Origin: Oculina patagonica
Lineage: Eukaryota
NCBI RefSeq assembly: GCF_052425735.1
Contig: NC_135758.1
Location: 19,096,001 to 19,160,000 of the forward strand
DNA: 64,000 nt
Reading direction: 5' to 3'
Positions 10,696 through 64,000 of this stretch are shown one piece after another. Each line of letters starts with the position of its first letter. The first letter of the stretch is position 1. Both the position numbers and the translations under genes were made by a program. The notes beneath the pieces were generated by a model. That model did not search any database and had not been told where the DNA came from. It saw only the letters and a program-made list of their open reading frames with translations.

Positions 10696-10756
10696 GTAGG
10701 GAGGAGGGGGATTTACCCTCCTGTCCGACAGGAGGGTAAATCCCCCTCCTCCCTAC
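10696..10756. repeat. Perfect palindrome with 30-bp arms and a 1-nt loop, followed by CTCCCTCCTCCCTA repeats
   Basis: GTAGGGAGGAGGGGGATTTACCCTCCTGTC-C-GACAGGAGGGTAAATCCCCCTCCTCCCTAC. Confidence 0.9.
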
Positions 10757-25043: not shown

Positions 25044-25278
25044 TTAGGGACGGACCATTATTTTTTTGGAGGGGGGGATGAAAAATATTGAAAAAACTTG
25101 TTTGCAGGGCCTGGAAAGACAAAATAAATTGTTTGCAAACACGATATGTATGACAAAAAATAGTAAGAATTTCGAAAAAAAATGTTTGCAGAGGTGCATA
25201 AACTAAAAAAAAAAGTTTGCAGAGGAAAATTTTTCATCCCCCCCCCCCCCCTCCAAGAAAATAATGGTCCGTCCCTTA
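25044..25278. mobile_element. MITE; same family as the copy in the ATP-grasp intron
   Basis: TIR AGGGACGGACCATT / AATGGTCCGTCCCT. Confidence 0.7.
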
Positions 25279-30221: not shown

Positions 30222-33200
30222 ATGGCACAACCCAAACAGATTACGCAAGAAACATTCGATGCGGTTGTCCGCGAAAATATGGAAGAATTTGAAATGGATT
30301 TGCACGAGGCAGTTCAAGACGCTATAGATCAGTTCAAGACTCAAGGCGTTGACTTGTCGAACTTGATCACATCATATGTTAAAGATCCAGACACAGGTGA
30401 ACTAAAACACAGCAATCCCGTCAAAGGTGAGGCTTTTTAAAAAGATACTTTGTTATACTTTTGGTTGTCTAGTAGCAACTCCAATTTTTATGAAGTACCG
30501 GCTAAAGAAAACTTGAAGCCAAAATACTGCATGTGTTTACACTTTATGCGGGATCGACCGCTATGACAACCGAAAATCCATTTTTAGAGGAGTTTAGTGC
30601 GAGAGAGCGTCTCCCAGTTTTAAACATCCTCAGGGGCCCAGGGGGTATGGGTTAGTGCTATCTGTCACAAAATATTTAAAGATCTTTAACACTGCTGGTC
30701 CCTTTTCTAAGCGCCATGGAAACAGGTGGATAATATTTTATCCCTGGTGCTATGTTCACATAGGACTTGTTTGGAATCTTTACAGTGTGAGAGTGGACCA
30801 GACCAGCTCTGTTTCCTTGGCAGTGTACAGCTTCCTTCCAAATTTGTGGAGGGGGACAGGGGGCGGGTGCCTGAGAGAAAAGGGTCGGGAAGTGGTATTC
30901 CTTAGGTGGCGGGAACCAGAAGAAAACGAGTAAAACCTCGGAACATTTTGTTATATTGCACAATGAATATGGAATAAAGAGGAGAGAACCGCTACGGAAA
31001 GGAATGGGAGGCGGGAGTAAAAGGTATGGGAGCCGGGAGGTTCAGGTCCCCCTGTCCCCCTCCACAAATTTCTCTTGAGGAGAGTGGTTGGCTGTACACA
31101 GGCTACCTGGCACAGTTTCTTTTATGAGAGTCTGTTTACTCCAGCCCTGCTCAGATGTGGTCTGCTACCAATTCAATGTGATTAAATCAACTGTTTCTAC
31201 CAGGTGATCACTCCAGGTAAAGAATACAGCATCATTGACTGGACTTATTTAGAAAGGCCTGTGTGAACACAATGCAGCCGGTCCCAAAACGGACTGAGGT
31301 CTTCATATGGGAGCAGTCTAGACTACAACTGGAATGCTGCAGTTTGAGAACTGGTCCTGATTTTTTTGCAAGGCTAAGAATTGTCCAGATAGGTGTACAA
31401 AAATAGCAGGGAACAAAAGAGTTATCAAGTCTGATTATTGGACCAGATCCATTTGGAACCACTCTTGTGATAACACAGCCTAAACGTCTGGGATGAAATT
31501 CAGTCTTTTATAAAAAACCCCAAGACAACTTTGTGATGGGCCTTGAGGCAGCTTAATTTTGACTTGGGGGGTTTATACAAGTCATGCTACTCTTCTCAAG
31601 AAGTTTTTACAGTTGAGAGATAAGAAAAAAGAAGAAGCAAGAAGGGAGGGGGGGAGGTGGGAGGATAGAGGGGGAATGGGTTGCCTAGGGGTTTATGATT
31701 ATAAGCAAATGAGCGTTCAATCCGTAAGCAGTTGTTATTATTTTGGTTATTATATATTGTCCATGTTGTGAGAATCAGTAAGTTGAAATTAGTTAATATA
31801 TATATATTTTTTGGTTCTAAATATAGATGCCTTGGACAAGATAAGGGCATCGTTACAAGATGATGAAACGCAATCTCTACTGGAAGGATTGAGGGTTTTC
31901 TCTCTGAAGTGTGACAAAAGTGAAAGTAATAGAAAATTTGCAGCAAGCAAAGATGCCTTAATCTTGCTTTTCTCCAGCTGCAACCATTGTTACTTACTGA
32001 AAGACAAAAACAATCTTGCTGCCAGTCTTGATGCCCTGAGTTCATTTTTACATGGCCAAGGAGATCTGGCTGATGCTAAAATGATTGAATTTCTGTCAAA
32101 TTGCTTGAAAGAACTGAAAGAGGAGATTTTAGTTGAGAAAATTGTCAAAGCCATAAGAGTTGCTTGCATCAAGAGCGAGTCAAATCGACAAACTTTTGTT
32201 GCCAATGACGTTTTACCTTGCTTAGTTGCTACTTTAAAGGAATTCAGACAATCAGCAGGGATTGTTAAAGAAACATGCACAGCTCTACGTGTTTTTACAT
32301 TTGATGACGACATGAGCGTAGCCTTTGGAAAAGCCCATGAACACGCCAAGTTGATTGTTGCAGAGAATGCATTTGCTGTGATTTTGGAAATCATGGAAAC
32401 CTGCAAAGATGTTGAAATGGCCAGTGAGCTGTGTGTAACCCTAAGTCGTTTAGCAGTAAGAAATGAATATTGCAAGGATATAGTTGATCTTGGTGGGTTG
32501 AAAATGGTGCTGAATTTACTAAAAGACCACACTAGCAACCAGGTAAGTCTGCAATTTATTAGTCCCAGGGCTTGAGACTTATGGTGGCCACAGACCAGTA
32601 ACAATTTTGTTTTACATGTAGCTTGTAGGTTTCAGATTTTACTAGCTGTTTTGGCTAGTAAAAATTTCAGGTACAAAATTCTCTACATGTAAATGGAGAA
32701 GGAAACACTAAAACAGAAATCTAGAATGAGAAGTGAAAACTACATGTAGCATGTACATTGTACAACTATGTACACTGTTGACATTATATCATAGAATCTA
32801 AAACCTTAAAATTTAAGCAACATGCTGAAATAATCAAACACAAATGGATGATGATCAGGCCTTTTCCATAATGAAAGCAATGAATGACAGAAACTGCTGT
32901 CTGCCAATTGATAGTTACATACAAGTTAAACAGTTTTGGCTAGTAAAAACCTGTTTTGGCTTGTAAAATTTAAGCTGTCACTAGCCACTGGGCTAGTCAT
33001 CTAAAAAGTCAGTCTTCAGCCCTGCACTTATCTCAGTCTCTAAAGTTATGGAAGCTCCTTGATCAGGTGCTCCATGTAGCCCCTTGTAAGTTATGCCCAA
33101 TATCTTATAAGGTTGCCATTACAGTTCACCAGTACAAATTATTTTAACAACCCTCAAGGTCTTACCCAAGAATACAAAACAATGACCCCAACCAGTGCAC

Positions 33201-34436
33201 AAACCTGGAGTCCTGCACACTTATCATTAGGTCAAGAACAGGCCATTAGGTCAAGAACATTTTTCTGGGTATCCCAAACACCTCTTTTTGCTATCCACTT
33301 GCTGAATAGCTACGGTGTGTCACAGAAAATCACTAAGGGCCGGCTGCCAGCTAATTTAGGTGGCTGAAATAGAACTTAAATCCTGCTGAAATTTCACATG
33401 AAAACAAAGACTTAGGTAAATTTTAGAGCCCAGAAAAGTCAACTAGGCTTGTTACTGAGCCTGTTTGAAATTTTGACACAATTAACTCCTCAGTGATCCA
33501 AAAAATTGTTTTACTTAACAGATAATTATTACACAGCCTGACTATAATATGAAAAATTCTTTATTTCTCAAAATTCAGAACATTGCTAAGCAGGTGTGCA
33601 CTCTTCTAAGAGCTATAGCAGGAAATGATGATGTCAAGACTTCCATTGTTGATGCTGGAGGCCTGGGGCTTATTGTTGTTGCCATGACTACCCATGCCAA
33701 ACAGCCAATGGTAGCAGAGCAAGGCTGTGCAGCCCTCGGATCCATTGCATTAAGGAGCCCTGCAAACTGCACTGCTATTGTTGGTGCCGGAGGAGTAGAG
33801 GCCATCTTGAAGGCAATGCAAATTCATGCTGAGTCAGCTGGAGTTCAGGTACATTGAGAAAATATTAAAAGTGCATATATAAAATAAAGCATTTTTTTCT
33901 TTTTACTACAGATGTAGTATTTTCTGTTCCAATCGCCATTAGTCTGTTTAAATAATAGATAAAATCATATCTTTCTGTTTCTGCAATTTATAAATTTTTT
34001 AAACTTATTTACTGCATTTTATTTTTGTTGCTTTACTATTTGACAGTATTTTAGTTCGTATTGTAGGTCACGTGTGTTTAAAGCTAAGTTTTTTTGAATG
34101 CTTAAATGAAAGGTTTATAAAAAATAAATTCACACCTACATGTTTTCTTGCACTTCATTCTGGACTGGTTATGATTTAGGCAAGTTAAACTGTACTGCAT
34201 TATTTACTCAATCTTTCTAGAAACAAGCCTGTCTGGCCCTGCGTAATCTAGTTGCCCGTAACCCAGAACACTGTGAAATCATACTGGAAGCAGGAGCTGA
34301 GAGCCTGATCAGGAAAGCACATGGAAAGATGGATGATTGTGAAGATTTAGCCAAGGCAGCCCTGAGAGATCTTGGTTGTGATGTAGAACTTAAGGAACTC
34401 TGGACTGGTACTGGCCAAGGAAGAGTCCAGCGCTAA
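30222..34436 (+). CDS. ARMC6: Armadillo repeat-containing protein 6, join(30222..30426,31827..32542,33579..33848,34221..34436), ~468 aa
   Basis: N-terminus [67 protein letters not shown]-terminus [20 protein letters not shown]. Junctions are in frame. Confidence 0.93.
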
Positions 34437-36129: not shown

Positions 36130-39100
36130 TCAAAATTCAAAATGTTCTTTATTTAATACCCCATGTGGGTCATATTCCTTTTTTAGGGTTTTCAGCCTTT
36201 GTAAATTGCTCCTTCCGAAGTAATTTTCCAAGCGTTGTTGACTGGTTGCTTCTACGCAGTCAGCGTAATTCTGATATGAGCCGAGCGAGTGAGCCAGCAA
36301 TGACTGACCAGCTGCTTCTGCCCACTGTCTGCATGCATGCGCAGTGCCATTAGCCTCGTCTTGAGGTTTCCACACGGCTTGCACACTGTACAGAAAAAGA
36401 GCATCTCTGTGTACGTAGGCGCAGGAATCACGTGACTTTCGGTTGATTTCTCCTCCCAGGAGCTCCAGACCTATAGTGTGAGGACCAGAACCAACTGGGG
36501 CCGATTCTAGCTGGGTTATTATGATTTGAATGACCTGAAATAGCCAAGAGAAACATGAAACGTTAACCTTCTCTGAATTAGATTTTCTGTCAGGTTTTGA
36601 GTGAATAAACAAAACGAAAACAAGGATCAAACTTGTTCTGCAACCAAAACCGTTTTGATTTCCCATTACAGTTACGTGAAAGGAAGGCTAGGCATGGCCG
36701 TAACCAGACCTTTACCATAGACGAGGCAAGACCTTGCTAGGAGGTTCTGGGGGCATGCCCTCCAAAAAGCTTTTGAAGTCTAGAAGCTCTGTAACTCTTT
36801 CGAGACATTTTTCATGAGGCATTTCATCTTGTTCACCTGGAGATTATTTTCCCAACAAAACATATTTTGTTTTTAATTTTGGGTAAAAATCTAGACGAGG
36901 CAAGAGCCTCATCTTGCCTTTTGCTAGTTATGGCCCTAGGCTAAGGATACGTCAATCATACTAAGTCAATATGTGGCCTCATCGGTCAATGAGACCGTCA
37001 GCTTAAAGGAACTGTGTCACGCATTACCGTACCTTCAAGTCCCCCATTCCTTCACTACAACTTGTCCTATAAAATTGTGAATTTCTAACATACTGTGCTC
37101 AGAGCGCTTAGAACAAGAAGGGAGAAAGTTTTACCTCGGGAGTTAATTCTCTAAGAAAAGCGGACTTCCACATCTTGCCCATTTTCTCAGGTTCCGCTCC
37201 AAATCTCTGTTGATATTCCAGGTAAGAAGTGGTCTGTTCTTGCCACGTGCCGTCGATAGCAGAGGAGCTCTCCCCTGGGGAACCGAACTTCTCCGTAAGA
37301 CTACGGAGAAAGGGAAGGAGTTTTCTCTCCGCGTCACACGGGGGTCCATCGTAGAAGTAGTCGACTGCAACCCCAGGGATTTGTGTAATAAGGTAAATAT
37401 TAAAGGTTACTTCATCTTCTGCTTCTCTGCAGAACTCGTTCATAACGTGCAAGAATTCTCCAAGCTTCGTTGCTGTCATCGGAAGATAGCAAAACCGGCC
37501 TGTTAAATGTAACACAAAATAACATTTTAACTTCCGATTAATTGTTAGTGTACTTTATGCATCAAGCTACTAGTTCGTTGTAATCACTTGCTCCAAGCTA
37601 GCGTGTGTTGCGCAATTTTGAAAGGCTAAGGATGTGTTACATATGTACTAAACCGATGTTTGGCCTCGTTTCAAGTAAACCAAAAGCTATCTATAAGGTA
37701 AAGTCTACAATTTGTTCACCAGAACTTGTCCTAAAGAAGTTGAGAAAACGCCCCTTTAGTCAACGTTTTCACTCTAATGGAGGAAGAGAGAAGACTCTGC
37801 GAACGACATAAGTATAAAATACTTTAACCAAGCAGACTCATTTTCAGTTGCGACTTATTTTTCCGGCATAAACAATACACAAGTTTATTATTTTTTTTTT
37901 GGTAAAAAATATATATAACAAAATTTAAACTTGTCCCGCTCTGCTTTGCCTCAATTTTAACTACACCGAAAGGCCTGGTTCAGCACAACATAATTTACAT
38001 AGCTGGTACATAGGCATAACGACATAAGGAAAAAAACGAATCCTTCCTTTACGTTTTTATATCTATGTTGTTAGTCTATTGATATGTCGCTATAGTGTGA
38101 ACCAGGCTTAAGACACCTCGTAATCAAAGTGAAAGTTAGACCTTGATAAACAACAGTAATGTACCTCCGACATATTTCTCTTGTAACTTGTGCAATTTGA
38201 CCTGTGCCTTGGTAACCACGCCATATCCCACCTGCCCAGCTCCCCTCAGTGCCCAATATAGCTGCTCGTGCTCTTGCGGTGATGCTACAATCCGCTGGCC
38301 AGTCGCTGTGACAATTTCCATTTGAAGACAGTTGTCGACTGCCAGCCCTTGTGTCCTGCTAAGAAACCCGAACCCTCCACCCAGCGTGAAACCGATAACA
38401 CCCACATCACTACAGGAACCATTCACCGCAGCGAGACCCAAGGGGCACGTGACGTCATCAAGATCCTTCACGGTCACTCCTGCCTCGATCCAGGCTGACG
38501 CTAATTCGACGTCTATGTCTATGCCTTTCATTGCCGACATATCAAGAACAAGACCTTCGCGAATAATAGCCAGCCCTGAATATTAAAAGAGTCTATAAGT
38601 TATTAATTCATTTATAAATTTAAGTATTTATCATTGACAACTGAACTCTCGAGCGGTCCAGGTTTCAGCCCTAGCCGGGGTCATTGTTTTGTATTTTTGG
38701 GAAAGACTCTTAGTCTTTACTCTCATTGTGCCTCTCTCCACCCAGGTGTGTAAAAAAATGGGTACCGGCGAATTTAATAACCCTGCGATGGACTAGAATC
38801 CCATCCAGGGGAGAGGGGAGTAGAATAGTCCTAAAATAGTCGTTTCCTGCTACTGAAACTGGGATAGGCTCCGGCCTGATGAGCCACTAGGATCGAATGC
38901 AGACTTAACCTTACCTTATCATTCATAACAACGTCTTTTATCAACGACACCGCAAACCCCACTAAGTAAGTTCCCATTGCCATGTTTTCTGACCAACTTG
39001 TGTCATGGGCATTGCACACTGCCTAATGCACAACTATTGGTTTAACTTGTTGGCGTTCAGGACACGGGGAAAGCCTGACTTATGACAAATGGTGCACGAA

Positions 39101-40614: not shown

Positions 40615-43484
40615 TTAAGAGTCAATATCACCAAAGGAATTAACATTTACTCCTGTGTAAGTGTTGGTCGGCGGCATCTGCTTACCAGGCTTCATCGGCT
40701 CAGCCAAATAGAACGCAGCTGGTAAGGCCCGCATCTCGGCAGCACAGGACAGCGGAACTGAAAATAAACAATATAGAGATATGTATACTTAACAATTATT
40801 CTATAAGCCCGCGTTGGATACGAGGTGGTAAATAGCCAACGAGGCGCGAAGCGCCGAGTTGGCTATAACGACTCGTATCCAACAAGGGCGAATAGAATAA
40901 TTGTTTTATTAAATTCTTCTTTAAGTTTAAATCGACTGGACATTTCATTTTGATGTAAACGAAGTGATAGTATGAGGAGGCGGGAAAATTTGTGGTGCGG
41001 TGTTCACTTTTTGAGTTGAATGAAACACGAGAGGAAAGCGAGCGAAGCCGGAGTTTTCTTCCCAAGATTTTTATCTAACAATCTTCTCTAAAGTCTTCTT
41101 TATATCTTGGAAATTGTGACAACAGTTAAGATTTACGGGATGATCCGAAGCAAAAGCGTTTCTGGAAACTACACTTCTTGTGCAAGTCGAACGAAGCAAG
41201 TGTTTACATTGTACGGCTGTCATCAAGACTGCTATATTATTTGAAGCGAAATTGAACTCAAAGCGGAACAGATTTATTGAAGTTTAAAAGGACAAGACCA
41301 AGATTGAAAGGTAATAAACTTTACAGAAGTGCTGAGCCTAATTTTAAGACGAACACTAAAAGGAACTGTCATTTTGCCGTTATTTCGTAAATTATTTTCT
41401 GCTTTTCTACTTTATTCACTCGCTCTTGTTGTTCGTTTACAAGTTTATTAATTAAATTTTTCTCATCAATCCTTTTGTTTTGCGTAATTAAATTTTACTA
41501 TGGCATTTCTGTGGTTTTTGTAGGCACCGCTGATTTTTTCTTGTTCACAAAGCTCGCCAAATTTGCTGTTTTCAACCATTTTTTCTGATGGAAGTGTCGC
41601 TTCCCGCAGAAAAATTTTACGCTGAGCGGCACTTGCCGCACTCATTTCCCATATAAGGTCAAACATAGGTATACGAGCTGGTAACCGGGATTCAGTGAAC
41701 CAATCAGAAAGCTAGAAATGCAATATCCGAGGTTGAGAATTTAATATAGCTATTATTAAATTTTCAGCCACGGATATTGCATTTCTAGCATTCTGATTGG
41801 TTCACTCAATCCCGGTTGTCAGCTCGTATACCTTAGTTTGACCTTATTTGGAAAATGATTGCGTTACTGTTGCCAAACTAAAATTTTTCTGCGGGAAGCG
41901 ACAGTTCCATCAAAATGGTTTTGAACAGCAAATTTGGCGAGCTTTATGAACAAGAAATAATTAGCGGTGCCTACAAAAACCAAAGAAATGCCATAGTAAA
42001 TTAAACTACGCAAAACAAAAGGATAGATGCGAAAAGTGTAATTAATAATACTTTTAAACTGAACGCACAGCAAGAGCGAGTGAATAAAGTATAAAAGCAG
42101 CAAATAATTTACGAAAGAACGGCAAACTGACACAGTTTCATTCAGTGTACGTCATAAAACTAGGCTCAGCACTTCAGTAAAGTTTGTTACCTTTCAATCT
42201 TGGTTTTGTCCTTTCATACTTTAGTAAACCTGTTCCACTTTGAGCTCAATTTCGCTTCAAATAATATAGCAGTCTTGATGACAGCCGTGGAGCCGTAAAG
42301 AAGTACAAATTAAACACTTGCCTCGTTCGACTTGCACAAGACTTGTAGTTTCCAGAAAAGGTTTTGCTTCGGATCTTCTCGTAAATAATAATAATAATAA
42401 TTTGCTAATTTATATAGCGCATATTTTCATGTTCTGATCAATCAAATCTTAACTGTTGTCACAATTTCCATGATATTTAGACGACTTTAGAGGGGATTGT
42501 TTGAGGAAAATCTTCTGAAGAAAACTCTCTTGCTCGCTTTCCTCGTATGTTTCATTCAACTCAAGAAGTGAACACCGCGCCAGAAATTTTCGCGCCTCCT
42601 CATACTATCACTTCGTTTACATCAAAATGAAATGTCCATTCGATTTTCAAGTTCAGTGAACTTGAGAAGAATTTAATAAAACAATTATTCCATTCGCCCT
42701 TGTTGGATACGAGTCGTTATAGCCAACTCGGCGCTTCGCGCCTCGTTGGCTATTTACCACCTCGTATCCAACGCGGACTCATGGAATAATTGTTAAATAG
42801 AGAGAGCTGGATTGACTGGTTCGACTAGCTATAACAGCCAAACCAAATTGTCCATGAAATAGCCAAATCGCTCTCGAGCAAAACGTAGCTTGAACCATAG
42901 TTAGTAGTAACTATTGCTTGAACCGAACCATAAACTCGCGCACATGAACAAACAATAAATTTTCAGTTCAGTACGAGAAATTAGACAGTTATAGCAGCCA
43001 TAGCTAAAGGCGAGAGAGCTTGGTCAAGGACTCGGTCGTTTCTTTTCCAAATGCTATTTTACATATCGAAATCGCTATAAATCTCCCAGCGGGAGAGTCT
43101 GCTTACTCAAGTATGTTTTGGAGAATCTGCTCACCGAAGCATCTTTTAGAAAACTTGCTTACTGAAACTGACTGAAAGGGGGACATATTAAATCCAATAA
43201 AACATTGGCAAAAAATATAACGTATTGCAGAGGTTTCTCTGTTCGTGAGTTTCAGAGCTCACTCCTGTAAACAAAATAGCTATTTCAAAAGTTCAACGAA
43301 TTGGCACGTTTAGTTCTAGGAAGGCACATCGTTGTTTTGGATTGATCGTGCATAAGATCTCTCCAAAATACTGCATTCAGTGTGCTGTGTTAAAGAATTC
43401 AGAGGACATAATGAGTTTTCTGATACCTGAAGGTTTCTCCTTTGGACCATCGCGTTTCTCAGGGACAGACTTGATAGCTTCCAT
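40615..43484 (-). CDS. Putative graspetide-like precursor A, complement(join(40615..40757,43427..43484)): MEAIKSVPEKRDGPKEKPSVPLSCAAEMRALPAAFYLAEPMKPGKQMPPTNTYTGVNVNSFGDIDS (66 aa)
   Basis: 58-nt ATG exon, phase-1 GT-AG intron, terminal exon. Same structure in four paralogs. Not in the ORF track. Confidence 0.8.
40790..42796. repeat. ~2-kb imperfect palindrome (two ~1-kb inverted copies of a repeat) inserted in the precursor A intron
   Basis: Arms match from TTAACAATTATT..CGCGTTGGATACGAGGTGGTAAATAGCC to a centre near 41750. The flanks are contiguous in paralog D (~62095-62130). Confidence 0.85.
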
Positions 43485-44030: not shown

Positions 44031-45243
44031 TGATTTGGTGGACCCGGCGTTTTTATTTATTATTTCTGAAAAACAGATATCGTAACGCTACAACTAATTA
44101 ATAAAGCTTGCCTTAACCTCAAATAAATGCTTGAGGGGCTTATTTGCAACATCACCTTAGAAACTCGGCGTTTATTCGAGACCAGCAATCGAGAAAATAC
44201 GGTGCCCTTGGGCTATACTCCATCTATTATGAAGTCAGTACGTGTCACACAACTAAAAAAGTGAAAGGAAAATGCGTGCTACTCTTGATCGACTCACAGT
44301 GAGCGATTGTTTTACCCTTCTACTTCATTGTTAAGCTTTTTAGGATAATTTCTTTCTTAGTAAACGTATAAAACAACTGTTAAAGTAGGCTTTACCAAGA
44401 TAACATTTCTTACCTCAAGCTTTTTTAACACCGCTTGGTAAACGCAGCTGAAACGTATGCACCAGTTGTATAAAGACCTATCTAAGTTTCTTGCCCTTTG
44501 TATTAAGAAATGCTAATATCTAACCCGAGGGCTTTCATTTTCGCGGAGATGATATCAACATCGCCTTTTGAAAGACAATTCGTGATGTGTGACTTTTCGT
44601 GTTTTGTTTGAGAATAGTGTCGTGGGTCTGTATCGAATCATCGTGGCATCGATTTTCATTTTCCCAGAATTTGATTGTTTATACGTTCTTGTTTTTTAGC
44701 CAGAAAAGTACGATTATTTTTTTAACGATTCTAAGAATTTTGGGAAATTTCCCTCACAATCAGGAGATATGGAAGATATTAATTTACATTTGTTAGAAGG
44801 ATATTTTCATCTTTTGAAAATTGCCTCTATTGTTGAATTGACGCTGGATTGTTTTTGGACTTTTCTTTAATTGACTTTCATTTTTGTAATTTCAAGAAGA
44901 CACCGATCTTATCAGCATGCGATACTATTCGCTTTAGATAACGAGAGAAAATAGAAAGATTAAAATCATTCTATTTACAACACAGCGGACAAATTTCCAT
45001 TGCAAATTACCATTTAAATAAGGCCGTGACATAATGTAACGTAATTATCGAGACCCGTTTCAAAGGGATTATATTCTATTCGTTTTCGTCAGCAGTAATA
45101 GCCCACGCTGGTCGCGTCAAGTTTCCAAGAAATTCCGGATGCAAAGAATATTTCCCTGTTTTCCTTTCACTTTTCAATCGTGTGACACTGATTTCACAAT
45201 TTTTAACCTGAACGCTTAGCGGCGAAAACCTGCTGTATCAACG

Positions 45244-46661
45244 ATGGCTAACACAATTCTGTGTATTGGCAGCGCGGAAGACCCGCATATTCAAGAGGTC
45301 GATAAACATGTGAAAGCAATAGACAGCAAGGCAAGAGTTGTGCTATTCAACCCTCTTTGTGGAAGCCATTTCATCGAAATCACCGCCGGAAATCTCTCAG
45401 AGCAAGGTCCTAGCTGTACTATTGTTGTGGATGACGAACGCATCAGTGCCGAATCGATCAGGTCTGTGTGGTATCGCTGGAAACCGGCCGTTCTTTCAGC
45501 AAATGAAGATCTCCAAGGTCTCATTGCCAAAGACTTCGCCTTAAAGGAGTGGAAATCGGTGATTCGTTCACTCGCGTCGTATCTGCCTCACGCGAGGTGG
45601 TTGAACCCGCTGGGGGCCTCGGAGCTGATAAACTGTAAACCGCATCAACTGAAGCTCGCGCAACAAGTTGGGCTGACTGTGCCACAGACCACCATCACAA
45701 ACAACCCAACAGCCGTGGAAAAAATCTTCCAGCAAGTGGATCACGGACGAGTGATATTCAAAAGCCTAACGCCTCTATTTGTGCCGCCAGATAAACTGCT
45801 ATACACAACAGAGATCACAAAAGAATTTCCATCCGTGTCCCGGGCAAGTGTAACACAGTGTCCAGCTATCTACCAGGAGCTGGTGGAAAGGAAATCAGAT
45901 TTGCGTATCACCGTCGTTGGTCGAGCAGTGTTTGTTGCCTGCATTGCTTCGCAGATACTTGATGAGAAGAAAGATCGCTTGGATTGGAGACGATGCCAGG
46001 AAAAGGACGAGATGTACAGTATAGCACAGGTATAATCATCTTATCACGGTTATAACACAGCATGTAGCTTTTAGGGACGGACCATTGAATTTTGAAAGGG
46101 GGGGGATTGGGCAATTACGAAAAAATTCTCGAACAAGGAAAGTAGGAGTAAAAAATCATGCAGAAGTAAGCACGGATTACAATTCAACCAAGTCCCTCTT
46201 TGTTAACATAGAGTTGGTAAAAGACTGAAATTCTTGCAAATATCAATGATCAAAAAAATCTTACTCCGGAGAAATTGGGCAACAACTCTACCCCAAAAAT
46301 CAAATGGTCCGTCCTTTACGGAGCTTTTAGGATCTATTGTTCCGTTGCTTATAGATGTTTAGCTGTTCGATTCCCCAGTCCCCACGAATTTGACTTCCTC
46401 GCATTTATTTCTTTCATTTTTTAACAGGTAACTGAGTCATTTAAAGAGCGCTTGCTAGAGTTCCACGAGAAAGCAGGCTTGGTTTTTGGCGCTTACGACT
46501 TCTTAGAGCGCGGTGATGACGTCATATTCCTCGAATGTAATCCCGGAGGAGCCTGGCTCTGGTTAGAAAACAGTCTTGGTCTTAAAGTGTGCGAACACGT
46601 TGCGCGATACCTTCTGGGTAAAGATGAAGCAAACTCTTCCAGAGCCACAAGCAGTGAATAA
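45244..46661 (+). CDS. ATP-grasp peptide ligase, RimK-superfamily MvdC/MvdD (graspetide synthetase)-like, join(45244..46029,46428..46661), ~339 aa
   Basis: Motifs [91 protein letters not shown]. Phase-0 intron CAG|gtataa...aacag|GTA joins ORFs 45244 and 46452 in frame. Confidence 0.9.
46073..46316. mobile_element. MITE in the ATP-grasp intron
   Basis: TIR AGGGACGGACCATT / AATGGTCCGTCCTT. Same family as 25044-25278. Confidence 0.7.
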
Positions 46662-47255
46662 ATGAATGAACTTAAGAGATCCAAATTTAAGACTGACATT
46701 ATTAGTTTCGGTTGTATAAAATAAACGAAAACAATTTATACGCGGGACTTCTGGTATGTAGACCACACTGTTATGACCCACATTTGAACATTTGACGTTC
46801 TTTATCTTTTTGTGAAATTTTGATTAAATCATTGTGATGTAGAGGTTTTATTTGAAACCGGTTTAAATGTGCGGAATAGTTTTAAGTAGCAAGACCTTGC
46901 TATCCCATCTCTGTAGAAGAACAACATGTTGCCAAAAGCAAAAGACAAAATAATAAAAAAACAGAAGATAGAGAAAAATGTTTGCAACTTAATTGCAACC
47001 TGTAGTATGTAGTTAAGTTACAGATCTTAATCGGTTAAACCTGAATAAACCTGTTTTTGCCGGCAGCTTTTGGTGAGTCAAAATGTGATTGGGCACGAAT
47101 TCTCGTCTGATGCAATCCCACAGTGATCTCTTTGTGAAAATGAACCAGAGATGAGTTTATACTTGTTGCACATGTGACACACATTTTTATTGGTTTATAA
47201 ACCTTTAACTGAACAGTAAGTGAGCGTTGGAGCGATTTTCCGTTCGCGAGTTCGC

Positions 47256-48335
47256 TTAAGCATCAACTTCTGAACAATGGGGTCCTTCTTCTGTACATCC
47301 GATCACTCCTGGAACAGTCATGGGCTCCACCAATGAGAAGGCAGCAGGGTATGTACGCACCTCGGCTGCGCATGTCATCGGCACTAAACAAATATCACAG
47401 CATGAGTAAATTATGACTGAACCCAATATCATATGCAGTGGATGGCTGCAATATTTAAATCAACTTTTCACCTTTTTAGTAACGGTGAACTAAAATTAAA
47501 AAAACTCACTGAAATGCAGTTAAAAGGGTTTAGGACAGTCAAAAACAACAAAAACAACTGATGACTCAAATTGCACACTTTTTCAAACAAACAAATGCCA
47601 TTGTTACAAGTTTAGCCGCGTCTTTGCATTCTTTGAGGAAAAAGTCCACAATGAGCCATAATCTAACTCTATAACTCCTGTTATTCCCTTGTTCACCTGT
47701 ACACCAGAAGAGAGCCAAAATGACTTGAATTGGTGTTCATTGTCATTTTTATTCGCTGTCTATACTGGCCGTAAAAAACCTTACAAATCCTTACATTTGT
47801 TGGCAAGATTTCCGCACAGGACCCTACATTAGTTATGCATACAATTTTCTGACTGATTCGTTCTTTTCATGATTGCTGTTTATGCATAGTGATAGTATGA
47901 AATAGTTGCATACATAATTAATGTAGGGTCCTGTGCGGAAATCTTTCCCATTTGTTCATTGTGGGCTTGGGGAACCTGTGCTTACATCAAGCGAAGCGAA
48001 ATAAACACTCGAAGTGGGAATATAATTTGTGACGTGATGCTGCAGTATGTAGAGTTTAAAACTAGAAAATAAACAACTATTAAACGAACATGTAACACAT
48101 ATGAATTGATCCATGTTTTATGTATAACTACGATGAATATTACCTTTGGTATTTTCTTTTGGATGTTTCTTCGTCTGAAGCGCTTTCTCTGCATTTTGGA
48201 GTACAATCTGCGAGAAGGAACACACCAGTGCGTAATGAACTCCACAGAAACAGCAATCCGTTAACTAAGCAAAAGTAACCTCGACAAAAATACAACAAAG
48301 CAAAAGTATTCACCTACCTCGCCTGAGGCAGACAT
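47256..48335 (-). CDS. Divergent putative precursor F, complement(join(47256..47383,48144..48207,48318..48335)): MSASGEIVLQNAEKALQTKKHPKENTKVPMTCAAEVRTYPAAFSLVEPMTVPGVIGCTEEGPHCSEVDA (69 aa)
   Basis: The terminal exon aligns with the other leaders (VPMTCAAEVRTYPAAFSLVEP vs VPLSCAAEMRALPAAFSLAEP) with the same phase-1 intron. The upstream exons splice in frame. Confidence 0.7.
47810..47941. repeat. Short inverted-repeat element in the precursor F intron
   Basis: TTCCGCACAGGACCCTACATTA / TAATGTAGGGTCCTGTGCGGAA. Confidence 0.7.
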
Positions 48336-50136
48336 TTTCGCAGTTGCAGCAAAACTTAACTCAGTTGCGGACACCAACAGAATATTTACTAAATGGTTCA
48401 TTAACTTTGGGTGAGTTCAGATATTTCATGCAAATGATATTACATGGTATTGTGACCAATCACATGCGAGCTATTGTTGTTGTGTCCGTCCTTGTTCTTT
48501 TCCATTTGAGTACCCCAAGAGACAGAGTTTATGGAGCAAAAAAGTTCAACAAACAAAATTGGAAAAAAAAATTGGAATTTTGATAGTATCAGTACAAAAC
48601 GCGCGAAATTAAAGTGAATCGTGATCAATAAATATTATATGTAAATTCAGTTTAAATTCAGTGTAACAACGTTGTCGGTATCTTTAGAATTTTCTTTTAA
48701 TTACGAGTGTTTGGCTTCGCATCGGAAAAAGTAATTGCATTCTTCTTGCGTTTGGAGTGACCAATTACATTCTAACTTATCAATAACACGTTAGTCTACT
48801 TTGTACGGGTTGTTTATTCAATACAGTGATCTTCAGTATCGTATTTCAGTAAGGTTTTCTAAAATATTTCGACTGCTAGAACTTTTTTTGTTATTTCAAA
48901 ATATGCCTTTTTCGAAGCGAAGCCATAACAAACTTTATTAAGTTTCTTTTAATTTCGTTTGATTTGAAAAGAATGTACATTGACATTTACAAAAGTAATT
49001 GTTATTTTATCTTGAGTATTGTAGAGTTGTACAATACGATTTGGAATTTATTTGCACAGCAGGTATTGCTGGTGACACCTTTGGTTTGGCCCGAAACTCG
49101 TAAACAACTTAGTATTAATATGTGGATGTGGGCGGAATAATGTTAAGCTAGGGTACAGTCTGTGTCCGAGCCAAGTGGCCCATACAGCCGGAGCTTATCC
49201 CGGTTTCTGTAGCATTAAGCGACTAGGAGTATTGCTATTCCCCCCTGGATGAGATGCTAGTCCATCGCATCGTCTCTTTAAAAATGCGCGTGCAAGATTT
49301 TAATAGCATTCAGAGAAGAGTTGTAATACCAGTGCTTTAATTTAGTAAACTTGTAGCTGAGGAGTAAACATATAAAAAAGAAAGCTGATTCCGTTGTTGC
49401 AGTGGGACTGCTTATCCCCGCTACAAACTGATCGACTGACAATAAACATCTCCTAGGATAATGGAAAACAATGACTGGTTTTCTCACAAAATAAGTCTTG
49501 AGGAACATGCGAAAAGTTTGTGGAAATGACTTCTTAACGGTCTTCTTTTCGGAAAAAAGCACTGGGGACTTGATTCCACCTAATGAAAGCTAGCGAAGTC
49601 CACCTCTTATAAAAGGGCCTTTTTTAAACACTGTTTTAAGGTGGCTCGATCGCGGGTTTTTGAGTGACGATGCCTTTCAACTTTGAGAAACATGTATGCC
49701 ACCGTAAACAAAACAACTGAAAATCGATAAATACAGCTGTACTAAGAAAGATGAAAGCTTCAAATGAGGTACGTTTAATTGAAATCGGAGTTACCATAGC
49801 AACATTATAACGTCACCACCCATTTTTACAATAGACCGATTTTCTTGCTATACAGGGAAACTTTTGTAAAAGGTCTATCTTGATCTTTGACTGGAGATGG
49901 TTTTTTCGAGGTTTGCAAAATTAGAAGAATTTCTATACGAGCGTTTTTAAAAAAATTTCGAATGAAGTTTTGAGCCACCTTTACTAGCTTTTTAAGCCGA
50001 ACAATTGATTGTTAAAGAGATAAATAGTCATTCGGGTTTACGCTTTAACAGTTTTATTTCATCGATTATAACGCCATTACATCTCATGGAATCACGATTA
50101 ATCAAGTTGATGCTGGCAAACATCTCGCTGGTCAAG

Positions 50137-51293
50137 TTAAGCGTCCCAATCACTGTAGGAATTGAGATTCATCCCCATGGTGTAAGAGGCTGTTGGCATT
50201 TGATTGCCGGGGTCCTTTATCGGCTCAGCCAATGAGAAGGCAGCTGGTAAGGCCCGCATCTCGGCAGCACAGGACAGCGGAACTGAAAATAAACAATGCG
50301 AAAAATACGTGGATAAGAACATCCAATTTCCATATATGGGGAGATTAAGGGCTGGATCGAATGACCTTTATAACAGAAAAAAACCAAACTGGCCAGCCAA
50401 AGCAAAACGCAAAAATACAATGTAAACGCTTAAACAGAAATATAAATTTTTAGGTACGTGGAAAAGACAGCTTAAATGCTAAAGGCGAGAGCTTGATCAA
50501 GGAAACTTTTTGTTGACAAATGCTATTTTACATATCCAAATCACTACTAACAATCTTCTAGCTCTTAGCGACATAAACTGTTTTCAAAAGGATCTTTTCA
50601 GAGAAAGCCAAAGTTGAAACAGCGACGTTTCTAAAATGAAGGATCATATGCGTGACTCAATTGCACTCTTTTAATTCTATAAGAATTTATTTTACAAGAA
50701 TATCGAGGCTGAAATTTGCGAAATTTAAAGAACATTTTAAGAATAAACCCGAGGCTAAGATTTTGAAAAGAATATAATTTTGTGTGTTGAAAATTTGTAA
50801 GAGAATATAAATATATATGTTTTTTCTAATACCTATAGAATTCGTCCTTTTTCAAAACGGCAAAACTAGACAAATGCTGATGCTATTGACAGCTCGATGA
50901 ACGATACATGTATAACATATGTATGGCATACAGCACAAGCAAAAAATGTTATACGCTATAATCTAAGAATATTCACAAGAATATTCAGCTTGGGTCGGGA
51001 GAAACAATATTCTTATACAAAAAGAGTGTAGTTTTTTTTAACTCACAATTGAAAACACAATATAGCTAATTTTTCAAAGAATTGGCATGTTCACTTTTAG
51101 GAGACTTGTTGTTCTTATAAAACATTTTATCTTCAGGGACTATTCTGGTTTAATCGTGCTAGAAATCTCTCCAAAGTGCTGCATTAAGTTTGCTGTGTTA
51201 GAAAATTAGAACAAAATAATGAGTTTTTTTGATACCTGAAGGTTTTTCTTTTGGACCATCGCGTTTCTCAGGGACAGACTTGATAGCTTCCAT
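50137..51293 (-). CDS. Putative precursor B, complement(join(50137..50282,51236..51293)): MEAIKSVPEKRDGPKEKPSVPLSCAAEMRALPAAFSLAEPIKDPGNQMPTASYTMGMNLNSYSDWDA (67 aa)
   Basis: Same two-coding-exon structure as A. Canonical splice sites. Upstream non-coding exon donor at ~51390. Confidence 0.82.
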
Positions 51294-55151: not shown

Positions 55152-56809
55152 TTACCAGTCCCAATCACTGTAGGAAGTGGCATGCTTCCCAAAGGTGTAA
55201 GAGGCTGTTGGCATTTGATTGCCGGGGTCTTTCATCGGCTCAGCCAATGAGAAGGCAGCTGGTAAGGCCCGCATCTCGGCAGCGCAGGACAGCGGGACTG
55301 AAAATAAACAATGCGATGAAAAGATTGATAAGAACTTTCCAGATTTAGGGCTGGCTCGAATGACTCTCATAACAGCCAAACTAAACTGGCTACAAGCCAA
55401 ATCAAAACGCAAAAGCAAAGTCCAAACGCTTGAACAGAAAAAAGCTTCAGTTAGGAGGAAAAGACAGTTAGAAATCAAATGCAAGAACTTTATTTAATAA
55501 AATTTTCGTTGCCAAATGCTATTTTACATCTCCAAATCTCTGTAATTACCGGTAAGCGAGAGAAAGTCAAACTGCTTTCGAAAGCATCTTTTAGAGAACG
55601 CCAAAGCATAGTTAGTAGTCCCCTCTACTATGGCCATAGGCGTACGAGGCGGGAGGGGGGGGGGGGCTGCAGCCCCCCCAGCGCCAAAATTTTTCGGGCA
55701 AAATGCTCGGAATTCGGGCAACAAGCCTAGAGAAAAAATAGAAAATAAGCCGACAAATCTATGACGTTCAAAACGAATTACATCAACAGAAATATTTATT
55801 GGAAATATAACTTTGTAGTCTTGATTTCTCATGTATGTTTTCGTTTCCTCTCGCAAACTGCTTTAATCCCCTACGATTTTTCTCGCAATTTTTGTGTTAC
55901 CCCACAGTTTGATTCAGTTACAATCATTTTGAAGTAAGAAGGATATTGGCAAGGTTGGCCAGAAGTTAGGATTCTCCATAGCTTGATCGTTTGCGCGCGG
56001 TGAATCCAGCCCTTTGAAACAGACCTTGAAACAAAGCTGTTTTAAAGATGTGATAAAGCTAGTGCTTTGACTCAAAATAAATGCTTAGTCGTAAGGGCTA
56101 GCTCAAAACTTTCAACGAAATGTTTTAACCCATTTACCTGACACGCTTTATCATATCTTGAGTTAGGGAATGCAAATTGCTGCCCGAAAATACGTTAATT
56201 TTTGCTAAACTCAGAAGTGGATAATAATATATTTCAGAATAAAAAATATACAGTGCATTGACATCACAACGAGACCTTATAAAAAAGCTTTCGTTTCCTA
56301 AAAGCAAGCAGGAAAGTTGAGGTTTGTACACAACTATTTCAATGTACGTTTCGTTGCCCATTTTAAATGCCTTTTTATTCGGCTTTCAATGCATGTAATT
56401 TTTTTTCGGGCAATTTGGTCTCCGCCCCCCCAGGTCCAAAGGTGCCCGTACGCCTATGACTATGGCCAAAGTGGGAAATTAATCTGATAAAACAGCGACG
56501 TTTTTAAAATGAGGGATTAGATGTGTTACTCAATCAGTGGATTTTGAACTCACACCTGCAAAAACAATATAGCTAATTGCATTTCAAAGAATTCGCATGT
56601 TCACTTCTGGGAAGACATGTCGTTGTTCTGATAAAAAGATAGTATCTTTAGGCACTATTTTGGTTTGGTCGTGGTAAAAATCTGTCCAAAGTACTGCATT
56701 TAGTTTGCTGTGTTAAACAAATTAGAACAAAATAATGATTCTTTCTCATACCTGAAGGTTTTTCCTTCGGACCATCGCGTTTCTCAGGGACAGACTTGAT
56801 AGCTTCCAT
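55152..56809 (-). CDS. Putative precursor C, complement(join(55152..55297,56752..56809)): MEAIKSVPEKRDGPKEKPSVPLSCAAEMRALPAAFSLAEPMKDPGNQMPTASYTFGKHATSYSDWDW (67 aa)
   Basis: Same exon structure and splice phase as A, B and D. Confidence 0.82.
55635..56458. mobile_element. Non-autonomous hAT-like element in the precursor C intron
   Basis: TIR CATAGGCGTACG / CGTACGCCTATG with a perfect 8-bp TSD ACTATGGC (55627-55634, 56459-56466). Confidence 0.85.
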
Positions 56810-58950: not shown

Positions 58951-59886
58951 ATGGTCTCACTGGTTTCATCATTCTTTTGCTTGTTAGCCCTGTGTATTTT
59001 ACTAGTCGTCGTCGTTTTATTTTACACAAAAACATGGAAAATGCTAATCAGCTGGCCGCTAAACAGATTAATTGATCTTTTCTACCACCGAATAACAAGC
59101 GATAAAGATCGACCCGGTAAGTTTTAATGTTCGTTTTATTTTGTGGACATTTTGTAGTCGGCAGTCGGAGTTTTAAAAAAGCGTTGCTAGTTACTTCGCT
59201 TATCATAATTTCCTTTTTACTACTGACTACTGGGAAATAGAGCCTTCATTTCGCTGATGAGCGTGGCTTATTTTTGTTAATTATTTTCAGCGGTGTTCCA
59301 GAACCATGTTCAATTGTTTCCATGGCTGAGCCAGCTGGAAGCTAACTGGGAAGCGATTCGAGATGAGTTGTTGTCCTTCGTTGAAAAAGGCACCGGACTG
59401 TGCAACGTCCATACTACAGGCGGAGGTGAGCTTAACAAAGAAAGCAAATGGAAGCTGGCGATGGTTTTTGGTTATGGCAAACCCATAGACGAAGTGAAAA
59501 GCTCGTTTCCCTTGACTCTGTCGATTTTGACAAAGCTTCCCGAAGTTCAAAACGCTGCATTCTCGCTTCTTAAAGCAGGTGGGTCCATTCCCCCGCATGT
59601 TGGCTCGACCGCGTCTATTCTCCGCTACCACCTGGCGCTAATTGTCCCGGATAATGGCAAGCACTCGTGGCTTACAGTGGCTGGCGTCAACATACCGTGG
59701 GGAGAGGGGAAAGGGATCTTGTTCGACGATACGTTTGAGCATTCTGCTCGAAATGGCGCAGAAAAAGATCGTGTTGTGTTGATTGTGGACATTTTCAGAC
59801 CCAATCTTGGACTAGTTGATGGATTGATTCAGAAAATGGAAGTGTGGAAACGTACGCAAGATTTTATTGCTGGCAGGCAAGGATAA
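58951..59886 (+). CDS. Aspartyl/asparaginyl beta-hydroxylase-domain 2OG-Fe(II) dioxygenase with N-terminal membrane anchor, join(58951..59116,59291..59886), ~253 aa
   Basis: FPWL..LEANWEAIRDEL, AAFSLLKAGGSIPPHVG, LRYHLAL, WGEGKGILFDDTFEHSARN, DRVVLIVDIFRP. Phase-1 intron CCC G|gtaag...ttcag|CG. Exon 1 is hydrophobic. Confidence 0.88.
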
Positions 59887-61893: not shown

Positions 61894-62842
61894 TTATGCG
61901 TCCCGATCACCGAAGGAGTTGGCATGACATATATCTGTGTAAGTGTTCGTCGGAGGCATCTGTTTACCAAAGTCGATCGGCTCAGCCAAATAGAAGGCAG
62001 CTGGTAAGGCCCGCATCTCGGCAGCCAAATAGAAGGCAGCTGGTAAGGCCCGCATCTCGGCAGCACAGGACAGCGGAACTGCAAACAAACAATATAGAGA
62101 TATGTATACTGGCTAAATAGAAAGCTGGAATGAATGGTGCGACTAGTTATAACAGCCAAACGCTTCCCCAAAGAAGAATGGAACTTGAACCGACCCATAA
62201 ACACGCGCACATGAAGTCAGAACAAACAATAAACACGGGCCTTACGTGCACCCATGCACGAAGAGGAGTAAGTAAGTAAGTACATCAACAAATAATAAAG
62301 GCAGTTAGCAACTAAAGGTGACTTTATTTTTTCTTTACCAAATGCTATTTTACATATCTAAATCGCTATAACTGCTATAAATCTTGCAGCGAAAAAATCT
62401 GCTTACATGAGTATCTTTTGGAGAATCTGCTTACTGAAGCATCTTTTAGAAAACTTGATCACTGAAAATTCTCTTTGAGAATACCTAAACTGAACTGAAA
62501 GCCTTTAAGGGGAACATTAATACGACGAAACAGCGTCGTAAAATGTAAGATAAAATAGGTTTCTCTGTTCGTGAGTTTCAGAGCTCACTCCTGTAAACAA
62601 AATATCTAATTCGATTTCAAGGAATTGGCAGGTTTAGTTCTGGGAAAGGATGTCGTTGTTTTCATGAAATATGTTAAATTTTAGGCACTATTTTGGTTTG
62701 ATCGTGCAAAAGATCTCCCAAGAACACTGCAATGAATTTTCTGTGTTAAAGAATTCGAACAAAATAATGAGTTTTTTTTTATACCTGAAGGTTTTTCCTT
62801 TGGACCATCGCGTTTCTCAGGGACAGACTTGATAGCTTCCAT
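61894..62842 (-). CDS. Putative precursor D, complement(join(61894..62078,62785..62842)): MEAIKSVPEKRDGPKEKPSVPLSCAAEMRALPAAFYLAAEMRALPAAFYLAEPIDFGKQMPPTNTYTDICHANSFGDRDA (80 aa)
   Basis: Same structure as the other copies, with an in-frame 39-bp tandem duplication in the leader. Confidence 0.8.
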
Positions 62843-63893: not shown

Positions 63894-64000
63894 TTAATAG
63901 TCCCAATCACTGTAGGAAGTGGCATGCTTCCCAAAGGTGTAAGAGGCTGTTGGCATCTGATTACCAGGGTCCTTGATCGACTCAGCCAATGAGAAGGCAG
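63894..64000 (-). CDS. Putative precursor E, partial terminal exon: ...AFSLAESIKDPGNQMPTASYTFGKHATSYSDWDY*
   Basis: Open frame nearly identical to precursor C, truncated by the window edge. Confidence 0.78.
   Translation of the reverse strand, partial: AFSLAESIKDPGNQMPTASYTFGKHATSYSDWDY

Follow-up and report, generated by a model that had tools for sequence, protein, structure and literature searches.

A putative graspetide synthetase gene with a spliceosomal intron, surrounded by precursor-like genes, in the nuclear genome of the coral Oculina patagonica

The 64,000-nucleotide stretch of the Oculina patagonica genome analyzed here (NCBI RefSeq assembly GCF_052425735.1, contig NC_135758.1, positions 19,096,001 to 19,160,000 of the forward strand; hereafter the window, numbered from its first letter) carries an ATP-grasp ligase gene of bacterial type, set among small genes that may encode its peptide substrates. 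The ligase gene lies on the plus strand and is present as a single copy in the window, as judged by tblastn. Its first exon (45244..46029, 262 codons) is an open reading frame (ORF) with matches to the protein family models TIGR04185, TIGR04187 and TIGR04184 and encodes the pre-ATP-grasp domain together with most of the ATP-grasp domain, while the second (46428..46661, 77 codons followed by TAA at 46659-61) matches TIGR04185 and supplies the C-terminal part of the ATP-grasp domain. The two are separated by a phase-0 GT-AG spliceosomal intron of 398 nt (46030..46427, with GT at 46030-31 and AG at 46426-27) that is confirmed by RNA joints, and once joined they form 339 codons for a 339-residue protein. 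The 5' untranslated region (UTR) extends over at least 45036..45243, given that RNA-derived contigs begin at 45036-45051 (X8 record 22 and X2 record 9) and that a transcript of a related species (L086) aligns from 45120 onward. The 3' UTR spans 46662..47065 and contains the polyadenylation signal AATAAA at 47044-47049, with the spliced contigs of runs X1 and X6 stopping at 47063-47065, 14-16 nt past this signal. At 47055-47065 the 3' end of the ligase mRNA (plus strand, ~47065) abuts or overlaps by ~10 nt the transcript of a convergent minus-strand gene, precursor F, whose contig reaches to 47055.

Splicing of the ligase intron was followed in contigs of four runs (X1, X2, X6 and X8) aligned to positions 44900-50850. 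A joint that skips 398 nt (GT..AG, cut at +4, equivalent to 46029/46428) is present in the 864-nt contig of X1, the 1354-nt contig of X6 and in X8 contigs, and an unspliced form is additionally present in run X2. Runs X1, X6 and X8 behave as RNA, because their depth falls to zero across intergenic stretches such as 48681-49078. The L086 transcript contig (1855 nt) encodes an uninterrupted 337-residue protein and aligns to the window in two blocks that omit the intron. The intron position, after codon 262, is common to five coral genomes, namely the window, Porites lutea (L002) and the three assemblies represented by contigs L087, L090 and L091. The orthologous introns of L002, L087, L090 and L091 measure ~440 nt, 351 nt, ~170 nt and ~1.2 kb, respectively. 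The divergent copy of the sea anemone Actinia tenebrosa lacks this intron. The Porites lutea gene carries a further 418-nt GT-AG intron in phase 1 at codon 92 (L002:10275-10692) that is absent from the window gene, which indicates that intron gain continued after the gene had been transferred.

The window intron also houses a miniature inverted-repeat transposable element (MITE) of ~242 bp (46074..46315), bounded by 13-bp terminal inverted repeats (TIRs) of sequence GGGACGGACCATT and a TTA target-site duplication. A second copy of the family lies at 25047..25275 with identical 13-bp TIRs and TTA flanks, so that the TIR occurs four times (46074/46315 and 25047/25275) against 0.03 matches expected. 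The same TIR was not found in the orthologous introns and loci of L087, L090, L091 and L002, and insertion of the intron MITE is therefore considered recent. The base composition of the ligase is that of its surroundings, with a third-position GC content of 0.50 compared to 0.36-0.55 for neighboring host exons, and pairwise ratios of nonsynonymous to synonymous substitution (dN/dS) among the window gene, L086, L087 and Porites lutea fall between 0.09 and 0.14, indicating purifying selection, a constraint under which the ligase is seen as retained in sea anemones as well as in stony corals. On our reading the gene has been domesticated, having gained an intron, a poly(A) signal, a host-like base composition and a host MITE. 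An original prediction made from the window sequence had anticipated much of this structure: the coordinates it gave for a two-exon, 339-residue gene with a clean phase-0 GT-AG intron were exact, the MITE family it saw both in the intron and at 25 kb is confirmed, and the 46029/46428 junction for which it proposed an RNA check is joined in X1, X6, X8 and the L086 transcript.

Family assignment of the ligase was approached through profiles, solved structures and fold prediction. Exon 1 matches the NCBIfam models TIGR04185 (MvdC) at 6e-33 over profile positions 39-249, TIGR04187 at 1e-29 and TIGR04184 (MvdD) at 1e-27, and exon 2 matches TIGR04185 at 7e-10 over positions 256-317 and the same set of models over 252-317. 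Because the two exons hit successive positions of the same model, the profile match is colinear across the intron. Pfam returns only a sub-threshold MvdD pre-ATP-grasp domain. All three NCBIfam scores lie far below the curated cutoffs, at 114.2 + 38.6 bits (153 summed over the exons) versus 425 for TIGR04185, 97.3 + 29.2 bits (126 summed) versus 475 for TIGR04184 and 103.8 + 39.1 bits versus 350 for TIGR04187 (SAV_5884). For this reason the window gene is, by sequence, assigned to the graspetide-synthetase superfamily as a member of a distinct subfamily and not as a microviridin maturase. The earlier description of the protein as MvdC/MvdD-like holds at the level of the superfamily and fails at the level of the equivalog, since the cutoffs are missed, no precursor of microviridin type is present and the ester/amide ligase pair is replaced by a single ligase. 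Assignment to RimK or to the metazoan RIMKLA/B was likewise rejected, with TIGR00768 reaching only E=0.042 (13.2 bits against a cutoff of 143.4) and no PF08443 match on exon 1, and an identity as synapsin or TTLL is not supported, the only strong sequence matches in the PDB being graspetide macrocyclases.

The structural comparisons point in the same direction. A full-length ortholog that is 90% identical to the window protein (P0005) finds MdnB (5IG8) as its best PDB sequence match at 1e-35 (phmmer), and the sequence matches among solved structures consist exclusively of macrocyclases acting on RiPPs (peptides synthesized ribosomally and then modified post-translationally), namely MdnB, MdnC, AMdnB, CdnC, PruB and PsnB. 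Exon 1 by itself already hits MdnB, MdnC, AMdnB and CdnC. A profile built from the coral and nearest bacterial proteins matches the six enzymes at 1e-75 to 1e-33, compared to 6e-6 for RimK. The AlphaFold2 model of P0005 is of high quality (predicted local distance difference test, pLDDT, 93.5; predicted template modeling score, pTM, 0.91), and a Foldseek search of the PDB with this model placed graspetide macrocyclases in all of the top 32 ranks (TM 0.70-0.78). RimK appears from rank 33 downward, so that RimK and RIMKLA/RIMKLB, which share the ATP-grasp fold with the coral ligase, form the next-best structural class. The model of a bacterial relative, P0093, also shows a confident fold (pLDDT 88.8). 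Profile, PDB sequence and fold searches together show that the protein is none of RIMKLA/B, synapsin or TTLL, as which the original prediction had not recognized it either.

At the residue level, every motif listed in the original prediction as typical of graspetide maturases can be located in the window protein, in the order given there: VWYR at 75-78, KPHQL...TITN from 132, YQE at 210-212, DLRITVVG at 219-226, DWRR at 247-250, GAYDF at 283-287, FLECNPGG at 296-303 and WLWLE at 305-309. Work on PsnB has identified a D(F/W)R loop (D233-F-R235), Arg72 and Arg213 as hallmarks of graspetide ligases, with the loop required for activity and the conserved arginines binding the core peptide and its acidic residue (10.1101/2021.03.09.434688). 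The corresponding loop is present in the window protein as D247-W248-R249, and across 42 aligned sequences (P0005 numbering) the D249 position does not vary, while variation at W250 and R251 is close to nil. R78 of the VWYR motif and R221 of DLRITVVG are also present, the R221 column being nearly invariant; on the basis of motif position these two would be the equivalents of PsnB Arg72 and Arg213. The ATP/Mg site is complete, with K173, Q211-E212, D286 and E298-C-N300 in place and little or no variation in the alignment columns of K, Q, D, E and N. R78, K173, Q211-E212, R221 and the DWR loop are encoded by exon 1, while the metal/ATP site residues D286, E298 and N300 and the WLWLE motif are contributed by exon 2. 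We regard the gene structure and family assignment as practically certain. A divergent cnidarian subclade, comprising the Actinia tenebrosa gene (L001:10001-11023) together with P0068, P0090 and P0091, lacks the DWR loop and has an altered Asp and Glu-x-Asn site (...VYNL..., FLDCDP). Judging from these substitutions, ligases of the Actinia type are likely catalytically dead or repurposed, and no gene resembling a precursor turned up in the 10 kb around the Actinia tenebrosa ligase.

Around the coral ligase, tblastn and translation revealed a family of ~7 small minus-strand genes, located on both sides of it and encoding products of 67-69 residues that have the layout of peptide precursors. The gene upstream of the ligase (40618..43484, exon 1 at 43428-43484 and last exon at 40618-40761) has a core ending in ...NSFGDIDS and is represented by P0242, an Oculina patagonica hypothetical protein. 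Immediately downstream, and convergent with the ligase, lies the divergent three-exon precursor F (47259..48335, minus strand, 69 residues), whose Cys-containing core ends in ...SEVDA and whose joints at 47383/48144 and 48207/48318 (GT..AG on the minus strand) occur in all four runs. A two-exon gene at 50140..51293 (minus strand) encodes a 67-residue product with LPAAFSLAEP in the leader and a core ending in ...TASYTMGMNLNSYSDWDA; the splice from exon 1 to 50282 is supported by RNA loose ends, and the product is 100% identical to P0232, again an Oculina patagonica "hypothetical protein". Further minus-strand copies were found at 55158..56809 (core ...TASYTFGKHATSYSDWDW; repeat families D1-D3 and D5) and at 61897..62842 (core ...NSFGDRDA), the latter with its leader motif duplicated internally at 61897-62082, and the last exon of an additional copy, ending in ...SYSDWDY, is truncated by the end of the window (63900..64000, minus strand).

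The commonest form of these genes has two exons, with exon 1 reading MEAIKSVPEKRDGPKEKPS at four sites and exon 2 starting with VPLSCAAEMRALPAAFSLAEP before a variable tail of 20-25 residues that ends in ...TASYTMGMNLNSYSDWDA, ...TASYTFGKHATSYSDWDW, ...NTYTGVNVNSFGDIDS or ...NSFGDRDA. Homologs in other corals retain the core QMPTASYTFGKD.NSYSDWD. Comparison of copies and species shows a conserved leader followed by a variable core in which the penultimate Asp is invariant. The N-terminal part of the products is hydrophilic, and in public records of Oculina patagonica and Porites lobata they carry no annotation beyond hypothetical protein. Contig depth reached 800-8700 over the exon of the precursor at 50140..51293 compared to 16-45 over the ligase, a measure that is unsuited to ranking genes. 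The pairing of ligase and precursor genes recurs in four other coral genomes (Porites lutea L002, L087, L090 and L091) over ~26% protein divergence. In L087 the ligase is itself tandemly duplicated (L087:30-278 and 10001-11368), with a second copy of exon 2 lying 10 kb upstream in repeated modules of ligase, precursor and hydroxylase.

The origin of the ligase was addressed by database searches and phylogeny. A word-indexed search returned ~75 close relatives, among which the named ones are from Acropora millepora (81% identity), Porites lutea (74%), Actinostola sp. (74%) and Actinia tenebrosa (41%), accompanied by paralogs of Acropora muricata (56%, known from a transcript contig only) and A. 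cervicornis (52%). Below the cnidarian sequences there is a gap, followed by proteins of at most 36% identity that include Streptomyces RiPP maturases. HMMER, run exhaustively over 1.84 billion representatives, gave 4853 hits, the best of which after the cnidarian-like ones are 39-35% identical. Those contigs of the nearest outside relatives that could be inspected have a bacterial character, with densely packed genes, sigma-70 and CHU_C neighbors and a small ORF directly upstream of the ligase. The nearest relatives in GTDB are a Bryobacteraceae metagenome-assembled genome, Rhodobacterales, Gamma- and Alphaproteobacteria, Roseomonas, Sporosarcina and Coxiellaceae, followed by Thermogemmatispora and many Streptomyces; the matching genomes span Acidobacteriota, Pseudomonadota, Bacillota, Chloroflexota and Actinomycetota.

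In a phylogeny of 84 rows (IQ-TREE, LG+C20 PMSF), to which E. coli RimK was later added as outgroup, the 18 rows from cnidarians (stony corals and sea anemones) group together in a single clade with 100/100 support and a stem of 0.83-0.84 substitutions per site, within which at least four ligase subclades can be distinguished. With RimK as root, the base of the tree falls among actinomycete and Chloroflexota lineages, and the cnidarian clade sits together with 43 bacterial rows in a larger clade supported at 100/98. Because a single cnidarian clade lies inside an otherwise bacterial group, the most economical reading of the tree is one old transfer from a bacterium into Hexacorallia, before the divergence of stony corals and sea anemones, followed by duplication, and on these sequence data a horizontal origin of the ligase is held with high confidence. 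The original prediction had proposed a domesticated horizontal transfer and suggested that phylogeny decide the matter; with RimK as root, the clade found is nested among bacterial sequences rather than within a vertically inherited eukaryotic lineage.

An ancient eukaryotic ATP-grasp gene, vertically inherited and lost almost everywhere save in hexacorals, would be compatible with a root on the cnidarian stem if the unrooted tree were considered alone, and the approximately unbiased (AU) test does not force the cnidarian sequences to nest in the nearest bacterial group. Such a history would nevertheless require massive parallel loss, and it is at odds with the rooted tree, with the shallowness of the one cnidarian clade set against 4853 mostly prokaryote-type representative clusters, and with the intron record, in which the Actinia copy is intronless and the corals have only one or two lineage-specific introns. 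We consider it very improbable. An indirect route, in which the gene reached corals through, for instance, a viral, dinoflagellate or other eukaryotic intermediary, or arrived more than once, draws on the length of the cnidarian stem, on the fact that no close donor was found and on the many database matches that carry no taxon name. Against it stand the full support for one clade of all 18 cnidarian rows, the bacterial context of the nearest outside relatives inspected and the absence of any named non-cnidarian eukaryote from the searches, in which the named eukaryotic matches were confined to Acropora, Porites, Oculina (precursor), Actinostola and Actinia and most database entries lack a taxon name. 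This route therefore appears quite unlikely, and a single direct transfer from a bacterium remains the preferred account.

The ligase sits within a conserved stretch of animal gene order. By Pfam, the window contains a CoA-transferase III gene (1580-10186, minus strand), a chondroitin synthase gene of the CHGN type (15396-22432), an armadillo-repeat gene (ARMC6, 31811-33857) and, between ARMC6 and the ligase, a multi-exon FAD_binding_4/BBE-type oxidase gene (36130..38540, minus strand), while a 197-residue ORF of the Asp/Arg beta-hydroxylase family lies downstream (59293..59886, plus strand; PF05118, 5e-37). The neighbors named earlier as ARMC6 and CHSY1 are thus recovered as Arm repeats and a CHGN chondroitin synthase. 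On the 1.59-Mb contig L090 the order ARMC6_N/Arm, BBE/FAD oxidase, ligase and Asp_Arg_Hydrox is the same, and parts of it recur in L091 and L087, the contigs of these three other coral assemblies measuring 0.57-1.6 Mb. The oxidase keeps its position in both L090 and L091 and is possibly part of the ligase cluster. The hydroxylase, a candidate tailoring enzyme, is retained beside the ligase in L090 and L091 and, as two copies, in L087. Outside corals it is most closely related to bacterial proteins, at 36-37% identity (Actinokineospora, Stellaceae and OlsC/LpxO-like names), and the cluster may thus contain a second gene of bacterial type. In those bacterial loci that were fetched, the 3 kb around the ligase hold no counterpart of the hydroxylase, and these lineages accordingly offer no support for transfer of the cluster as a whole.

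This conserved setting also bears on whether the gene belongs to the coral at all. Bacterial contamination, an assembly chimera or a decaying relic would be suggested only by the bacterial affinity of the protein itself. Contamination and chimerism were rejected on the strength of the spliced RNA joints, the shared intron site, synteny in independent assemblies, the host MITE and the poly(A) signal. Decay into a pseudogene was rejected on the intact frame, the full set of catalytic motifs, the dN/dS of ~0.1 (0.09-0.14) and expression in several runs. Splicing, the shared intron site, synteny and dN/dS thus exclude these explanations, to which we attach a negligible probability, in line with the earlier argument against contamination.

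Other mobile sequences were noted in the window. Inside the CoA-transferase gene lie a DDE_Tnp_4/HTH_Tnp_4 transposase ORF of PIF/Harbinger type (6526-7674, minus strand) and a YqaJ/SWIM (YqaJ-like) ORF (5114-6190, plus strand). A transposase of the Harbinger type is in keeping with the MITEs at 25 kb and in the ligase intron, both flanked by TTA. All four runs showed contig depths of 4,600-26,000 over the segment 49079-49277, which occurs there next to many different sequences and is probably a short interspersed element (SINE)-like repeat carried in many transcripts.

Taken together, these observations make it probable that the ligase is a functional, nuclear-encoded graspetide synthetase of corals that descends from one ancient bacterium-to-hexacoral transfer and has since been domesticated. 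That it acts on the neighboring peptides is, on the evidence of their linkage and sequence, reasonably likely. In the mechanism we propose, a cytosolic ligase would bind the conserved leader (...CAAE..LPAAFSL.EP) of the signal-peptide-less precursors encoded around its gene and would use ATP to phosphorylate the side-chain carboxylates of C-terminal Asp residues in the D-x-D arrangement. Upstream Thr/Ser (or Lys) side chains could then attack the acyl phosphate to yield omega-ester (or omega-amide) macrocycles, and the neighboring enzyme of the Asp/Arg-hydroxylase family may add a hydroxyl group. We infer catalysis on these peptides, the ring topology and the biological role from sequence features, and by analogy with microviridins a protease-inhibitor-like or defensive peptide is a plausible product. 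The fuller proposal, that the hexacoral nuclear genome holds a complete domesticated pathway of ligase, amplified and highly expressed precursors that were possibly co-transferred, and a bacterial-type hydroxylase, is one toward which we lean only slightly.

Several points weigh against this interpretation. NCBIfam and Pfam recognize neither the coral nor the bacterial precursors. In bacterial relatives the ORF directly upstream of the ligase has a layout comparable to that of the coral precursors, with PFGLRFxE followed by a stretch rich in Thr/Ser and a terminal DxDxD, which speaks for the substrate link, but hhalign pairs the coral LPAAFSLAEP with the bacterial IPFGFKFREK at E=0.17, which is not significant; for this reason co-transfer of the precursors with the ligase is put forward only as a hypothesis. 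Neither the precursors nor the ligase has a signal peptide, which raises the matter of how a product would reach its target. The specificity of characterized enzymes is not transferable to the coral ligase, because its scores fall so far below the MvdC, MvdD and SAV_5884 cutoffs. Some bacterial graspetide synthetases require partner proteins (PMC13097080), and the ligase alone might for that reason be inactive. With regard to origin, rooting depends on the very long RimK branch, and the AU test (p=0.32) does not distinguish cnidarian sequences nested within the nearest 38 bacterial rows from a position sister to them. Finally, the runs that provide the splicing evidence bear the guessed label "RNA?".

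The membership of the precursors in no known family and the insignificant likeness to bacterial precursors would also suit a transferred ligase that is functional on some other substrate, for example in RimK-like C-terminal amino-acid addition or small-molecule ligation, with the adjacency of the small genes a coincidence of a duplication-prone region, and the oxidase and hydroxylase of the cluster would be at home in small-molecule chemistry. A coincidence of this kind is difficult to reconcile with linkage of ligase and precursors in five genomes over ~26% protein divergence. The ligase moreover retains the D(W)R loop and the Arg residues that are specific to graspetide enzymes and is barely matched by RimK-type models, and the leader, the Ser/Thr/Lys donors and the terminal DxD reproduce the layout used by graspetide enzymes. 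Action on another substrate is thus considered unlikely, and a graspetide synthetase acting on the adjacent precursors remains our favored interpretation.

Comparison with known systems clarifies what is shared and what is distinct. The microviridin macrocyclases MdnB/MvdC, which form omega-amides, and MdnC/MvdD, which form omega-esters (PDB 5IG8, 5IG9 and, for AMdnB, 7M4S), have the same pre-ATP-grasp and ATP-grasp fold as the coral ligase and are its best sequence and fold matches, sharing the DWR loop, the Arg residues and the E-x-N metal site at a full-length identity of ~25%. The S-D-W-D end of the coral core recalls the P-S-D-W-E-E segment of microviridins. The two systems also differ. 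Microviridin systems employ an ester/amide ligase pair, whereas the coral has one ligase in 64 kb, and the GNAT and ABC transporter genes of microviridin clusters were not seen in the coral cluster. The leader motif is LPAAFSLAEP in the coral and PFFARFL in microviridins, and the cores (...TASYTFGK..NSYSDWD. compared to TxKxPSDx[DE][DE]) are differently spaced. The coral gene lies in the nuclear genome of an animal, contains an intron and is transcribed on its own, while microviridin ligases are cyanobacterial.

Closer relatives are found among uncharacterized bacterial graspetide synthetases (P0093, P0094 and P0097; metagenome-assembled genomes of Bryobacteraceae L006, Rhodobacterales L007, Gammaproteobacteria L008 and Roseomonas pecuniae L011, among others), which are 35-43% identical to the coral ligase and share with it FLECNPxGxWLWLE and WR.KP. 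These bacteria have a single ligase and an adjoining small precursor with a hydrophobic leader motif ending in E, a Ser/Thr-rich stretch and a terminal DxD(xD). Their precursor lies directly upstream on the same strand in operon style, whereas the coral precursors are separate two- or three-exon genes on the opposite strand in ~7 copies. Bacterial graspetide pathways with oxygenase tailoring or partner dependence, namely corallotide (group 15, CorB/CorC), rosaritide (group 21, MirB/MirC) and the Asp beta-hydroxylation of SmaO/SmaX (group 18) (PMC13097080), provide a precedent for a 2-oxoglutarate (2OG)/cupin-type oxygenase in the cluster and for Asp-x-Asp-x-Asp acceptors, and the coral cluster keeps a PF05118 gene in synteny.

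Fixation of bacterial-type biosynthetic genes in anthozoan nuclear genomes has a parallel in the genes for the mycosporine-like amino acid shinorine, which two reports describe as a bacterial-type set with an ATP-grasp enzyme that is anthozoan-only among metazoans (PMC3640398, PMC4083563). The likeness, drawn from the literature only, extends to the inclusion of an ATP-grasp ligase; the shinorine pathway yields a small-molecule sunscreen with an ATP-grasp enzyme of a different family, whereas the candidate substrate of the coral ligase is a ribosomal peptide. Graspetides were termed "bacteria- and archaea-derived" in a 2026 paper (PMC13418204), and neither a phylogenomic survey (PMC8939145) nor a RODEO survey of more than 20,000 biosynthetic gene clusters (PMC13097080) mentions a eukaryotic locus. 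Our searches of the searchable literature, whose coverage leaves out most subscription journals, likewise found no eukaryotic graspetide ligase or cluster, including under graspetide combined with cnidaria. The enzyme class is known, and what is new is the setting: an animal nuclear gene with an intron, accompanied by tandemly amplified separate precursors and conserved across Hexacorallia.

In summary, this locus carries a practical warning for annotation against discarding genes of coral assemblies as contamination because they look bacterial. If the proposed function is correct, this would be the first graspetide pathway encoded in an animal genome, with animals making side-chain-macrocyclized ribosomal peptides, and the fixation of such a ligase would represent a rare case of RiPP-type chemistry entering Metazoa. 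The precursor genes point to abundant unannotated coral peptides, which may matter for defense, for control of symbionts and the microbiome, and as stable peptide scaffolds. As a class they would be new among coral peptides, and their likely roles would be to inhibit proteases or to control the holobiont.

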